64,000 bases of DNA from positions 1,612,001-1,676,000 of the forward strand of contig CM119386.1 of assembly GCA_051294905.1 (NCBI GenBank), in the 5' to 3' direction. The DNA comes from Botryllus schlosseri (Eukaryota). The position numbers and the translations under genes are program-made. A model generated the notes under the pieces. That model was given only the letters and a program-made list of their open reading frames with translations, had not been told where the DNA came from and searched no databases. Positions 13,741 through 22,800 of the stretch are shown piece by piece. Numbering within the stretch: the stretch's first letter is position 1; each line of letters starts with the position of its first letter.

Positions 13741-15017
13741 CACGGCTGACGTTGGGGTTACTTCAAGTCGAACTATACAGTGATGCCAGCGCAGTGTGAT
13801 GGCGAATAAAGTGTCTAGTAAATGCTAGACCGAATGATTGGTCGCTAAAGGGTCACCGATACCTAAGAAGTGCCATGCCATTTTTCATAATAATAATAAT
13901 AATATTAAACCAAAGTGAAATGAATGATGTTAGTTCCAATAAAAACTACAAAATTGACGCGGTACAAGACAGTACAGAGTAGGCTACATCAGTACATGGA
14001 CGCTACCAAGGTATATAAGTGGGATTGCGTTTGAAACAAAAATCATTTTCAAACAAACCTATTTCAAATATGTTTTTGCCATGATTTCCTACGGAGAAAA
14101 ATAGCATCTGAAATCACGATACTGCGGTTTGCGTAAGTGTACTACATGGGATGACAAATGAACACGTATTGAGAATACAGTCGACAACAGTGTAGCTGCA
14201 GACCAAGTTCGCATAGATCTGAGGACTCGAGAAATTAAGCAACAAAATATTATGACGCATAAATAAATATATACGAGGTGTAATTACAAGAAACTTGAAT
14301 CATCTTTGTGGAAGGTCAATAAAATACGCCCGCAATGCAATGATAGTGGTATTTTCTTTGTTGACCCTCTCGCGTCGCATCGTTGCACTGTTGAGAGTTC
14401 TCATACTTTCAAGACAGGCTAACAAGAAATCACCGCCAAGCGGTGTCTCTGGTCAACAGATAAAGAAGAACAATTCTGATTAAGATTACGATGGATATGA
14501 ATTAGCATTCCGTTGTAACATTGACTCTGCTGCTGTGGTTTTTACCTATGCTGACTTGGCGGACCCGTACGCTAATCTGCAAGTCTTCGGCGAACCTCAA
14601 CTTTTCGTGTAGCTTGGCAATGTCACAGTCCTGAAGATTCTTAGGTTCTGAGGACCGGGGCTACTGGCTTACCTACTTTGGCAGTCTAGTTTTCATTGAT
14701 TCTATAATGATGAAACTGTGATATTAAGAATCTGGGTTTATCAACTTGCGTAACCATAAAACTCATAAGTATGCTGAAGTGACTTGTGCACTTCTATAAC
14801 GGATTAGCGGTACGCGTAGGCTACAAGCGTTTAAAATTGATTTAGACATATCTCGGGTCGATCATGTCTGATTAGAATCGTCCAAATCGTCATTCGTGCT
14901 CCCCGTAAATGGTAGTATTGTTTCGTCGTATAGGAATTCCGCAACGCGATTCATGCGTTAACTACTTCTACTTAAACATTTTTGCAGCGCCCGCCTTGGC
15001 GGTGCGTATATCTTGTT

Positions 15018-15066
15018 CTCTGGCTTCTCTTCATCATTCGAACAAAACTTTCGCCTTTTACTAAAG
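15018..15066 (+). ncRNA. U5: 5' fragment of U5 snRNA (about nt 4-50, including loop I GCCUUUUAC), carried inside the retrotransposon; not a complete gene
   Basis: CTCTGGCTTCTCTTCA-TCATTCGAACAAAA-CTTTCGCCTTTTACTAAAG compared with canonical metazoan U5 (ATA)CTCTGGTTTCTCTTCA-GATCGCATAAAT-CTTTCGCCTTTTACTAAAG. The 19-nt loop I block is identical. The 3' half and Sm site are absent. Confidence 0.88.
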
Positions 15067-15150
15067 GAATTTTAGGCTGTTAGAAGGTAGTAGTAGAAGG
15101 GGTGATAACCTCAGCGCTCTGTAGCGCTGTGGTATTGAGGTTGAAGTGAG

Positions 15151-19400: not shown

Positions 19401-19817
19401 AGACTTGGCACGCACAGTTCGGAATGTGAATTCTGTAACACCGGCATTGAAAACATCAGACACCTCTTTGTCAGATGTCAAGTCACCAAATCAATTATAA
19501 CCCGACTACTGCAAGCCTGGGATAAAGCGGCAAACGAATCTTCAACGCAGCCTTCAGAAAATATGATCGTAGGGCTGAATCTGCCTGACAGCCCCAAAGA
19601 AGATGCACTGCTTCAAGTAATAACAATTTTCAAGCAAGCAGTATGGAGAATGCGAAACAGACGCGTGTACGAAGGAGTGCAGCCGAGTGTCCTCTGGCTG
19701 GTAAAGTCCATCACCTTACGAATACAAAACAAAATCAACCAACAGAAAGATATACTTGGACCGATCACCACTGCAGCACTGACGCAAATAAGACGAAATT
19801 TTCTAGAATTAACCTAA
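16440..19817 (+). CDS. Retrotransposon ORF2 (1125 aa from ATG 16440): APE endonuclease + reverse transcriptase + C-terminal CCHC zinc finger
   Basis: EN motifs TLNVNGL, QETH, GDFN, SRLDRIY, SDHDAV. RT motifs PGPDG, NYRPITLLNVDYK, DFKKAYD, GIKQGDP, YADD. C-terminal CEFC...HLFVRC. The open frame extends upstream to 16296, but the EN domain starts at the 16440 Met. Confidence 0.97.
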   Translation: MDRLTVITLNVNGLNNSTKRSLIFDYLKKSNADVCFMQETHTTLETELIWEKEWSGRSFWNSYDENSAGTAILLSPRRPDIRIVGTHKDPEGRIINIDTIIGNVKLQLTNIYAHTDSAKKRPQFYRMARSTFKSSNKIIAGDFNSVEEPEIDRINTVPLKDKKDTEALKESLKITGVKDAFRSLYRTKKEFTYKYSGGQSRLDRIYVSESITLKSCEHRSCPYSDHDAVLLKTVIQEREIGEKIWKNNTMIYQEDRFQNELASRWEKWQTLHPILCQTKVEWWIAIKDKIKTIAIKQANRLRKEKGIKLETELENLNKIRKEIDQGKPLLDEYRRAKKKIWNLEAESLQKLQLQAKIESENCLDKIPSLLFEKIRERREPAYINELADTDGKKTTDHAKKRVIAAKFYRDLFKNRPIDKKCSEDFLAHVNSTLSDEQVSELDSEITLAEVQMAVFSQHKCRTPGPDGLSAEFYQWNWDTIKYDLVEIFNELYGGNEINQKILEGVVKVIHKTGDKSNLKNYRPITLLNVDYKILSKIITVRIQKFLPKISHEHQYVNRPNKIEDLNLLLREISENMKERKKGTIVSVDFKKAYDSISHEFMLSVLKKIGFGTKALTYIGNVYKNSTARISINGRIGDTIEIGRGIKQGDPISMILFTLTTEPLLQVLNKKTAGYKLSGMRKEILTPAYADDITLTTSRRADAEYCIGIIKKFTRASNLEMNEEKTKGIQFGPDNSTPGSSLRWVDNIKIMGISISKGNNKKQWRSLYDDAAEICRKTKDLKMRIDEKVIVIRTKILPKFVYLGTIEPMPLEIRSKLKKLIMKTLFDNYARVEYETIVKDKIAGGLDLLDIPTKLDLQFIKPAIKFLKTSESDNNDWTKRVEQQIAITFSKFLNYRLNNARPHAFDPLQHWKSMLQVIENYQITKEEIQKESLRAIYKKVIARKRSRDPAPVWVNWKNVNSNTLRPAERNFNWEVGHNTLYTKDRMYERLGTHSSECEFCNTGIENIRHLFVRCQVTKSIITRLLQAWDKAANESSTQPSENMIVGLNLPDSPKEDALLQVITIFKQAVWRMRNRRVYEGVQPSVLWLVKSITLRIQNKINQQKDILGPITTAALTQIRRNFLELT

Positions 19818-22800
19818 AACGATTATGCTCCGTAATTTTCATTTAATTTAATTTACAGTCAATATTATGATCCAATGCTTCTGTAACACTATGTTTCATG
19901 ATGATTTTAGTTCGCAAAAAGTTTATGAAACGTCTCTTTATTTTCAATTAGCCTATACGAAAGATGCCTTTCCAAAGATTGAAACAACATTGACGAGAAG
20001 ATAATAGGCATGCTTGCATTTAATGAAGACATTCTTTCAAGATTGTGCTGGATGCAATGTCTTGTTACGTTCAATAGTATGATGAAATATGTGTTTGCCT
20101 TATGTAGTTTTCATGATGATGTTAAATCTTACATTGTGTAAGAAACGCCTCTTTTTGATTTCAAATAAACGAAAGATGCCTTGGCGGTGCGTATATCTTG
20201 TTCAATCAATTTTAGCGGCGGGTCCGCCAATAATTTACGTTGCTGGTCTTAGCTCAGGGGCCGGCAGCCTTCATATGCAGTGCGCCAAAATACCAATAAA
20301 CTTTAAAATATTAATGACTGGCGTATCAAACATTTTTAATTTTGTCGTATTTCGCGTTTGAAGCAAGGAATCCCGCCTACCACCTATGTGAAGCTGGCAA
20401 CAGCATCGGTAACGTCAGTGGTTCTTACGGTATTGGCCCCGAAGGGTACACAATTTGCCGCTACCGCCTTAGACCTACCGCCTAATGTGCGTAATATTTG
20501 CATCATTTAAATTTAGTCGTCTGTGGTTGCCTTGATCCAAACGGATTCATACGATATTAGGTTGCAGTATATATATTTTTGTGGGTTTACCAAAATCAAG
20601 AAATTAGGTCATGGTAAATCGCGAGTAGCGCGAAAAAATGTTCATGATAACTAAAATCTGCCCAAAAGACTCTGCTTCGTGTTCATATAAGGGGACTAGC
20701 AAGTCAAAAACCTAACTTGCTGCCCCATCACCATCAAATTTTCACAGTCGCTAGATGTCGATATGCTATATACAAAAAAATCGACGGAGTTGGTGCTACT
20801 CCGCAAATTGTGGATTTGAAGGAGAAAAAATGCAACGACACGGGGAATGCAAAATCTCCAAATTGTGGAGCCTTTTTTTTTATCGAACACCTTCTTTAGG
20901 AAGTACTAGGACAGTGCTGAGCTATGCTAAAATTTGAACGATTTTGTGCTACCCATCTCGGAAAAATTTCATTTCGAAAATTAAAAATTTAAATTTTTGG
21001 TATGAATTTTCCGTAAGTTTGCTGTGACGTTCTCCAACTCTCAGCATGGTAGACCTATGTCAAAAAACTACTAGCATAGCACAGGTCTGAATGTCAGCTT
21101 TCGAAAAAACCTTGAGTGAATCATTTAGGACAAATATTTCATACAAACTTTTGGTTTACCGTGATGCGACAAAACAAACTTTTATAATAGAGAAAAACAA
21201 TAACAAACATTTGCAAAGTAAAAAGCCAATAAACATGTGTGGGTACCGATGTAATCATAAGAATGAGTGCCAGAATGCTTGAACGACTAAGAATATCAAT
21301 CTAACAAATTTCACCAGGAAATTAGAAAGATATATATTTTGTCACAGTCAAAACATATATTTTATAGAATTTTCGGACGAGAAGTGCTATCTTTTTGTTG
21401 GAACTTGGAATAAAAAATACCCCCTGCCCCTGGCATAACGAAATTGAAATTTTGCACTTTCAGTTATAGTTTAGGTGAAATAAGGCCGTGAGGTGACAGC
21501 AGAGATACATTGTTAATATTTCCAACCACAAAATTAATTGAAAATTTTGATTTTTTTGACTTGCCAGTCAAGTAATTTCATCTCCTACCATTTTGAAATC
21601 CTATTTTTTGCAACGAACATGGTTATACCACTTGTCGTGTTCGTCAAATCATTTGGCGTGTCATGAAAGATCATCTCGCATGCCATAAATGACACGGGTA
21701 CCGTGGGTTGTCGACCCCTGTCGTAGGTATTTCCATGCGGTATACCGGCGGCATTTCCATTGACAATTTTCCACCTCTCGAATGTTTTCATCCTGGCTTG
21801 GTCTTGCTTAGCTTCATTATATTAACGTTCTATCCGTATGAAAAAAGCGTTTATACTTTGTCGACTGGATCGTTTCAATTCATTACTTCACTTTACGATC
21901 TCGCCTTCCGTCACTTGCCACTTTATAATAACTTCCTTTACTTTCATTCAGTGTGCATGCCTCCTCTTTACATCGCCTAGGCCCAGGTTACTGTCTGATA
22001 TTAAGACTGCTCCTAGTCGTTTCGGCATCTTCCTTTCATTCATTGCATTGCAGTCTTGTGATGTTTTGAAGTGATGAGATTCTATGAATAAACCTGAACT
22101 TGAAAGGCCTTACTGGGCATTGGGGTTGTTCAAAAATACCTATTTTTCGCGTTTTTGTGGCATATTGATCAAATTGTTCGGTCGGCTAAAAAAGCGTTCG
22201 GGATTTCAAGTGTGTGGAACAGTATCTCGCCGGCTATCCAAAAGGTGTCGAGGATGTCCATTGTCCATGTGTGATCCGACTAGTAGACTTTCGCGGTCGT
22301 ATCGATCATTCCTACCTGATACCAAATACCGTGCATGCATATTTTCTCTACCACCATCATTGCTGTCTATTTGTTACGTATTTTGATTGGATGAAAATAA
22401 AGTCCAGTCAACATTCAAGTCGAAATACAAGTAATTTCTACTGAATGAATACTAGCTAGGTCTCAATTTTACCGGACTACGACATGACATATCGATCCAG
22501 CCGCCGGTTCAAGTCCCGCCCTCGGAGGTTATTCTGGGCGTCGCTGTTCTTACTGCGGCAAAAAGTCCAGTAAACAAGACACTATGAAGAATGGAAGAAA
22601 CGAGCAATAAGAAGTAGCGACGAAGAAAGATTAACAACCATGAAGACTGTGAAATCGGGCACGAGGCCGAGGTGAATGCCAGATTAAGAGACTGCAACTG
22701 GTCTTTTCTGCATCCTCCTATAAGTTCATTACATCGCATTGTGTGTCTTGCATATCGCATTGTACATTGTGTGTATTCTTGGGCAGACGGAAATATAATC

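Follow-up and report, generated by a model that had tools for sequence, protein, structure and literature searches.

An L1/Tx1-group LINE family inserted in the U5 snRNA genes of Botryllus schlosseri, with stray copies that carry a transduced U5 head

A 64,000-nucleotide stretch of the Botryllus schlosseri genome (GenBank assembly GCA_051294905.1, contig CM119386.1, positions 1,612,001 to 1,676,000 of the forward strand; hereafter the window) contains a retrotransposon that begins with part of the U5 small nuclear RNA (snRNA). Comparison of its copies across the genome shows, at the level of sequence, that the family to which it belongs targets U5 genes, and that the U5 segment at its 5' end (the head) has been transduced from U5-resident progenitors rather than vertically inherited. 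Taken together, the results make it probable that this is a young, U5-specific family whose resident progenitors are transcribed into RNA from the U5 promoter and give rise to stray daughters that bring the head with them.

The element occupies positions 15019-20177 and is, by its sequence features, a full-length long interspersed nuclear element (LINE) of the L1/Tx1 group, that is, a retrotransposon without long terminal repeats, with an apurinic/apyrimidinic endonuclease (APE)-type nuclease. It lies between perfect target-site duplications (TSDs) of 26 bp: gccttggcggtgcgtatatcttgttc is found at 14993-15018 and again at 20178-20203, with identity at 26 of 26 positions, as the first-pass annotation of the window had reported. 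The head (15018-15066) is followed by an 84-nt leader, the 5' untranslated region (UTR) proper (15067-15150), by open reading frame (ORF) 1 of 426 amino acids (15151-16431), by ORF2, an open frame of 1173 amino acids (16296-19817), and by a 360-nt 3' UTR (19818-20177), all on the forward strand. The 3' UTR includes an internal copy of its own terminal module, an AATAAA signal at 20164-20169 and the terminal string AATAAACGAAAGAT, which abuts the TSD directly; a poly(A) tail is absent.

The annotation's description of both ORFs as intact, with endonuclease and reverse transcriptase in ORF2, is borne out. ORF1 has one CCHC zinc knuckle (CGYCNEPGHLYRQC, residues 187-200; the Pfam zf-CCHC_2 match is under the cut-off) and a Cys-rich C-terminus. 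ORF2 matches Pfam Exo_endo_phos (2.2e-16), RVT_1 (1.5e-34) and zf-RVT (PF13966, 3.4e-9), with the APE-type endonuclease at ~16458-17117, the reverse transcriptase at ~17970-18698 and the zf-RVT/CCHC region at ~19296-19493; a zinc-binding motif, CEFCNTGIENIRHLFVRC, is located at residue 1044. Translation of ORF2 probably starts at M49 (position 16440, 9 nt past the ORF1 stop), since residues 1-48 are disordered in the AlphaFold model and ORF2 of a second family, described below, begins at the residue equivalent to M49. The closest solved relative of ORF2 is human L1 ORF2p (8sxt, E 8.6e-73, residues 48-916) and the top Swiss-Prot model found by Foldseek is Xenopus Tx1 ORF2 (P14381, E 7.5e-61, 20% identity), with L1 ORF2 proteins close behind (3.8e-58 to 4.2e-56), in keeping with the Tx1/L1 assignment made at first pass. 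In a large protein database the nearest entries are at most 29% identical and none is usefully named, a protein atlas search returned generic endonuclease and reverse transcriptase clusters only, and a search for contigs encoding ORF1 or ORF2 found no record. The hallmarks of APE-type L1/Tx1 elements are present (endonuclease then reverse transcriptase in a single ORF2, a C-terminal CCHC in ORF2 and a zinc knuckle in ORF1), as are two traits that are typical of the Tx1 clade (sensu Kapitonov 2009 and Kojima and Fujiwara 2004) without defining it, sequence-specific insertion and the lack of poly(A). Insertion footprints fit target priming: TSDs measure 26, 20, 17, 14 and 12 bp, 5'-truncated copies of ~330 and 467 bp occur, and the family's 3' end is invariant (...ACGAAAGAT). 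ORF1 is open in eight of eight assembled full-length copies, ORF2 in six of the eight and both together in six of the eight, whilst three copies are at least 99.8% identical; the family is young and probably active.

The identity of the head is clear from the host's own genes. The head starts at about nt 3 of U5, extends through loop I (...CTTTCGCCTTTTACTAAAG) and matches several host U5 genes at 49 of 49 positions, among them C16:2144550-2144598 and C12:21054110-21054158 (E 2e-16); these genes score 86-88 bits against the Rfam U5 model RF00020 (gathering score 40). The genome encodes many bona fide U5 genes (74-90 bits) in two classes. Type-A genes are arrayed in tandem on C10, where the repeat period is 1008 bp (7357-7396 kb on the forward strand, 7550-7576 kb on the reverse), with further units on C14 and C6, whereas type B is dispersed over C16 (three genes), C11, C6, C12, C3, C8 and C10; all U5 DNA combined amounts to ~10 kb in a 495-Mb genome. 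The window head is of type B. Scored against RF00020 directly, head plus leader reach 25.5 bits (E 0.067), under the gathering score because this half-molecule has neither the Sm site nor the 3' strand of stem I, and an Rfam scan of the whole window at the gathering threshold gave no match. The earlier recognition of the head as U5 thus stands on its identity to bona fide genes and not on its covariance-model score; on this comparison the head is a fragment of U5, not a U5 gene.

Evidence that U5 genes are the target comes first from the 3' ends of the family (family 1). Copy counts given here and below come from genome searches and are lower bounds, copies having been examined at their ends and in selected middles. 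In a search of the genome with the 3' end, 10 of 21 family-1 ends ran straight into GCCTTTTACTAAAG, then A or T, then TTTCCGTGG..., which is U5 from loop I on. The exact 23-mer across this junction, ACGAAAGAT/GCCTTTTACTAAAG (here and below a slash marks the junction), occurs 14 times in 495 Mb and a reversed-pattern control not at all; as the uninterrupted U5 loop context occurs 53 times, about one in five U5 units is occupied by an element. When the second family is included, 16 of 28 3' junctions fall at C/GCCTTTTACTAAAG of U5, all sharing one nucleotide position and one orientation, well in excess of chance. Occupied loci include dispersed type-B genes on C12, C16, C5 and C9 as well as array units on C10 and C14. 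The resident copies have the orientation of the U5 gene and a 14-bp TSD, GCCTTTTACTAAAG, and on their 5' side an upstream box and U5 nt 1-52 precede the junction CTAAAG/GAATTTT... (both are retained in the residents C10:7368169, C10:7549633 and C12:20958504), so that the element lies between U5 nt 1-52, headed by the U5 promoter box, and U5 nt 39-115. The first-strand nick separates the C from the G of ...CTTTC/GCCTTTTACTAAAG..., within loop I of U5. Copies of just this kind, inserted at loop I behind a U5 box and ahead of GCCTTTTACTAAAG and the U5 3' half, had been predicted from the window copy alone.

A second family (family 2) uses the same U5 phosphodiester in six of its seven copies. Its ORF1 (352 amino acids) is 49% identical to that of family 1 and its ORF2 (1125 amino acids) 82% identical; its leader is ~11-17 nt long, and its UTRs cannot be aligned with those of family 1 save for the terminal AATAAACGAAAGAT, which both families keep at their extreme end. 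Intact copies are found on the reverse strand at C10:7551626-7556295, C10:7564509-7569178 and C12:21049542-21054158. The next closest endonucleases in the genome are only 38-45% identical. Among other elements, intact ORFs of ~1132 amino acids at C1:6167235-6167915 and C1:6187810-6188490 encode an endonuclease 44% identical to that of the U5 family; the best two U2 genes, C1:6173439 and C1:6181142, are ~6 kb away from these ORFs, which may represent a U2-associated, Keno-like family.

The box retained upstream of resident copies is very probably the host proximal sequence element (PSE), judging by its recurrence. All eight type-B U5 genes compared, three of them occupied, carry an invariant CACCGTAAATCTT ~60 nt before CTCTGG, although these genes are dispersed and their upstream sequences otherwise divergent; type-A units have CACCGCAA(C/T)CTTT at about -63, and U1 genes have CACCGCAA or CACCACAA at -58/-59. 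It is this conservation at about -58 to -63 in dispersed type-B U5, type-A U5 and U1 genes that points to a PSE. A forward-oriented box at ~-60 was not found in the best U2 genes, and the box is therefore not universal across snRNA genes.

Six of the 11 full-length family-1 copies lie outside U5 genes. Three of the six are flanked by a clear TSD, which measures 26 bp in the window copy, 20 bp in C8:28191199 (GCCTCTACACACTACACAAC) and 8 bp in C8:22062503. Stray TSDs start with GCCT and are preceded by C in the window copy (where the TSD begins GCCTT) and in the C8, C9, C2 and probably C12 copies, indicating that C/GCCT is native to the target and not carried by the RNA. What directs the element to such sites can be read in two ways. 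According to the first, to which we give an even chance, targeting is purely local: the endonuclease, or annealing between primer and template, reads only C/GCCT(TTTAC...). GCCT is indeed common to most stray sites, and one family-1 copy (C14:18320435) is nested in the ORF2 of another at GCCTTTTTTACC (element nt ~2835), a self-target that resembles the U5 site. On this account PSE-like boxes that accompany three young stray copies owe their position to chance or to open chromatin. The window insertion site lies 92 nt downstream of the start of one such box, CCCCGTAAATGGT (14901-14913, forward strand), in the host flank and in the orientation of the element; C8:28191199 lies 92 nt downstream of CACCGTAAATACT; and a 467-bp copy at C2:19552k (TSD GCCTATTTCGTAACGCA) lies 93 nt downstream of CACCGCAAATCTC. 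These spacings are close to the 96-98 nt of U5 genes, and the three boxes share one orientation and match a stricter core, CCG[CT]AAAT. Over the rest of the window, by comparison, a box (at most one mismatch) is found at -98 to -89 of 3 of 254 GCCT sites, and none of those three has the core. From this background the probability that at least three of seven strays would have a box is 5.6e-5, a figure attached to a pattern that was spotted post hoc with n = 3. No box is seen at strays C8:22062503 and C9:18140114, at older copies or at the nested insertion, as local targeting would have it.

The second reading, which we hold tentatively and with rather less confidence than its rival, ties the whole element cycle to PSE promoters. 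An snRNA promoter of RNA polymerase II (Pol II) would make a 5-kb bicistronic coding RNA, and a PSE-bound complex or early-elongating polymerase would, in addition to the local C/GCCT sequence, guide integration, such that strays would insert at about +33 to +35 behind PSE boxes other than those of U5. Targeting by this APE-type LINE would then be both tethered to promoters and sequence-specific. More generally, integration may be aided by an snRNA-type promoter complex, or by DNA opened by transcription, at about +35. The spacing pattern, if real, would mean that LINE target choice also depends on promoter position.

The site struck by the window copy has features of its own. The target unit (14901-15018 plus 20204-20290) is snRNA-gene-like: the box is at -59 of a TTAACT start, the C/GCCUU site lies in a hairpin loop, and AAUUUUAG and a GC-rich terminal hairpin follow. 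The unit belongs to a seven-member repeat whose six paralogues are 73-78% identical (for example C8:26903170 and C16:7690418), and an Rfam search with two of these paralogues found no significant family. Elsewhere in the window, at ~53975-54300, there is a dispersed repeat ~80% identical to the target of stray C8:28191199; it has CACCGTAAATACTA and, ~30 nt upstream, the reverse complement TAGTATTTACGGTG. The string ATAGTATTTACGGTGACC is also present upstream of the best U2 genes (C1:6173633-6173760).

Where the heads came from is most easily seen by comparing copies. The junction CTAAAG/GAATTTT is identical in all 11 full-length family-1 copies, each of which has the head. Families 1 and 2 differ by 18% in ORF2 and 51% in ORF1 at the amino acid level, yet have the same type-B head with 100% identity, whilst stray C8:28191199 has a different head, CATTACACGTAC, which equals the U5 variant at C11:2311176 if one CpG change is allowed. 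That diverged families share one head, and that a stray of family 1 matches another U5 variant, argues for heads taken from the resident gene and against vertical descent. Insertions into type-A units point the same way, since RNAs with type-B heads gave type-A, chimeric or tandem heads there: array copies C10:7368169 and C10:7549633 have pure type-A heads, C14:18326590 has a type-A/type-B chimera joined at CTCTGG, and the array insertion C10:7562458 (99.96% identity to the window copy) shows an array-type head, filler and a type-B head in tandem. Tandem heads with filler are also found in two family-2 array copies, whose 5' junctions are pieced together from several type-B head fragments by what appear to be template jumps.

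Five copies have a head that did not come from the gene in which they reside (four off-target copies and the tandem-head copy). Their heads begin at AACTCTGG, CTCTGG or TCTGG, with one at GCTTCTC, all 0-8 nt from the predicted U5 +1, and none reaches upstream of it. The window copy can be placed in this series with good confidence, as part of the model as a whole: it would be a stray daughter at a C/GCCTT site, reverse-transcribed to within ~2-3 nt of U5 +1. That it is an off-target daughter, as first proposed, agrees with its possession of its own TSD outside U5 and with a head starting at about U5 nt 3.

It might instead be supposed that the head was captured once and is now a fixed part of the 5' UTR, with an internal promoter in head or leader, and that residents look single-headed through homology-mediated joining at their 5' ends. 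This we consider unlikely. Some of the observations fit it well enough, namely that every full-length copy has a head with the same junction, that both ORFs remain open in stray copies and that the 5' 135 nt fold more stably than shuffled sequences (z -3.3). The heads, however, track host U5 variants and not the phylogeny of the elements, as seen in the head shared by families whose ORF1 proteins are 49% identical, in the C11-type variant of C8:28191199 and in the type-A heads of array copies. In addition, transduced heads start at the same U5 positions in family 2, even though its leader is ~11-17 nt long as against 84 nt. Nor does the head pair specially with the leader: a co-evolved head-leader helix was considered and dropped, since dinucleotide-shuffled leaders give duplex energies at least as good (z 0 to +0.8). 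Template switching, one-off or recurrent, in which the reverse transcriptase jumps from the 5' end of the element RNA to free U5 snRNA as in mammalian U6/U5-L1 chimeras, was raised in its one-off form at first pass and is effectively refuted. Jumps between templates at 5' ends do happen, as can be seen from two array junctions that contain filler and repeated pieces of head. The breakpoint between U5 and leader, however, is the same nucleotide in 11 of 11 copies and in family 2, and it coincides with the boundary of the U5 target site on the top strand; the head never includes the U5 3' half, and full-length U5-resident copies of progenitor type exist.

Two further loci and a feature of the leader can be mentioned alongside the heads. 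At C16:12741400-12743300, nt 1-31 of the head of a boxed type-B U5 gene are fused directly to element nt 814; ORF1 is truncated in this copy, ORF2 is still open (1175 amino acids) and the 3' junction lies in that same U5 gene. At C14:18326500-18326650 there is a rearranged U5 unit in which U5 nt 1-26 are fused to the 3' half of an upstream box, followed by a type-A start, GTGCTCTGG, that runs on as a type-B head and then by an internally deleted element of ~2.1 kb. Immediately after the head, the leader (15067-15080) has the sequence GGAAUUUUAGG in the window copy, and subfamily-B copies (for example C12:20958k) have GGAAUUUUUUGG. The latter resembles the Sm-site consensus, but a function for it appears doubtful because the string varies between copies (GGAATTTTTGAC in C10:7368k).

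The 5' ends of the strays bear directly on how resident copies are expressed. Transcription from U5 +1 by the U5 promoter is likely, and we rate it about as highly as the overall model, since it offers the simplest account of why the 5' ends of stray copies lie near U5 +1. The first-pass proposal of a U5-resident master copy with a U5-promoter transcript has thus gained its residents, whilst its transcript is deduced from the stray 5' ends. Several points weigh against this account. Four raw-read RNA-seq runs were compared with positions 14900-20300, and one gave appreciable coverage, consisting of 233 reads, mostly partial and of low quality, spread over 15081-20300 on both strands; across the four runs depth over the head was zero and no starts or joints were called, so that a U5-initiated transcript is neither shown nor refuted. 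Promoters of the snRNA type normally feed their transcripts into 3'-box/Integrator processing and make long polyadenylated mRNAs poorly, and an internal promoter that happens to start at the 5' end of the head is possible. Five events underlie the match between 5' ends and +1, which has 1-3 nt of microhomology ambiguity. Finally, the direct progenitor expected for the window copy, a subfamily-A copy in a type-B U5 gene, was not found in this assembly by our lower-bound searches.

The 3' end of the element gives clues to priming. With the poly(A) signal 8 nt from the end of the element, RNA 3' ends would fall within U5 sequence further downstream. The 3' UTR of the window element also has an older terminal module embedded in it (19894-19979), which ends ...ACGAAAGAT at 19965 and runs into a U5-loop-like 14-mer, GCCTTTCCAAAGAT (19966-19979), a decayed piece of the U5 loop. 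A mosaic on C15 (13046101-13046620) likewise has a family-2-type end, 19 nt of intact U5 and then a family-1-type 3' UTR. That terminal modules with U5 fragments are embedded in 3' UTRs suggests that transcripts run into downstream U5 DNA, which may then be re-incorporated by 3' transduction or tandem insertion.

A cycle of the following kind would accommodate these observations. A resident copy would be transcribed from U5 +1 by the PSE-type promoter to give an RNA consisting of U5 nt 1-52, leader, ORF1 and ORF2 and extending beyond AATAAACGAAAGAT into downstream U5 sequence. The 3' end of the nicked target (the complement of GCCT...) would anneal to the U5 tail of this RNA and reverse transcription would start exactly at ...AAAGAT, which would explain why the new copy has neither poly(A) nor the 3' part of U5. 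Where the target is a U5 gene, the head of the cDNA would recombine with the resident U5 head, restoring a single head, whilst at a non-U5 site the head would simply be brought in.

Site-specific APE-type LINEs are rare and are sought both as models and as tools for targeted gene insertion. The present system offers two young families with several natural open-ORF copies and a target, U5 loop I, that is invariant across eukaryotes. An snRNA promoter driving a coding RNA would be unusual, and because the stray copies act as natural 5'-end tags pointing to U5 +1 as the RNA start, the question of transcription is directly testable. Transduced heads derive from dispersed type-B U5 genes only and may serve as a readout of U5 gene activity in the germ line.

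How, then, does the family compare with known systems? Site-specific Tx1-group LINEs occupy several multicopy RNA genes, with Keno in U2, Mutsu in 5S and Dewa in tRNA genes (PMC4494074, PMC4640811). The annotation knew of no described U5-specific element, and this holds only in part. The legend to Fig. 3 of Kojima 2015 (PMC4494074) lists 'U5, U5 snRNA' among known Tx1 targets with no description in the text, and Kojima and Jurka (PMC4640811) give the reported targeters of snRNA genes as Keno and Utopia (U2), Dada-U1 and Dada-U6 only. U5-targeting Tx1 elements are thus not wholly undescribed, the sole trace that we found being that figure legend. The family so labelled is, like ours, an APE-type LINE of the L1/Tx1 group with a U5 snRNA gene target, but the label stands in a tree figure only, with no host, site, junctions or mode of transcription given. 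Keno (Kojima and Fujiwara 2004, cited in PMC4494074 and PMC4640811) resembles ours as an APE-type LINE that lacks poly(A) and joins its multicopy target, a Pol II snRNA gene, at a precise 3' junction; it differs in its target, U2, and neither a transduced snRNA head nor promoter dependence is described for it in those two papers. The snRNA-L1 chimeras of mammals (Buzdin 2002 and Garcia-Perez 2007, cited in PMC4494074) also have an snRNA fused 5' of a LINE within one TSD, but with variable breakpoints, a 5'-truncated L1 and random sites, in contrast to the fixed breakpoint, full-length copies and U5 residents of the window family. Co-transcription with an invaded target can aid precise insertion, and dependence on it is known for R2 (PMC4494074).

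R2 and R1 in 28S rDNA, and SLACS, CZAR and NeSL in spliced-leader (SL) genes, resemble the window family as site-specific LINEs that rely on transcription of the gene they invade. R2 and SLACS use a restriction-like endonuclease, and R2 is transcribed together with its target gene by RNA polymerase I and released by a ribozyme; the start of SLACS RNA is the +1 of the SL RNA gene. The window element, by contrast, has an APE endonuclease, and the 5' end of its RNA is apparently the snRNA +1 itself. A looser parallel is offered by Dictyostelium TRE5-A and yeast Ty3, which integrate at a set distance from the RNA polymerase III (Pol III) promoter complex, tethered to TFIIIB or Pol III and without sequence specificity. 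Their fixed distance from a promoter is possibly analogous to the 92-98-nt PSE spacing described above; the window family differs in using an exact local sequence, possibly in an snRNA-type (PSE) context, and tethering is here an analogy only. Set beside these systems, what marks out the Botryllus family is unusually clear natural evidence for the 5' end of a LINE RNA, together with a possible promoter-position component in the choice of target.

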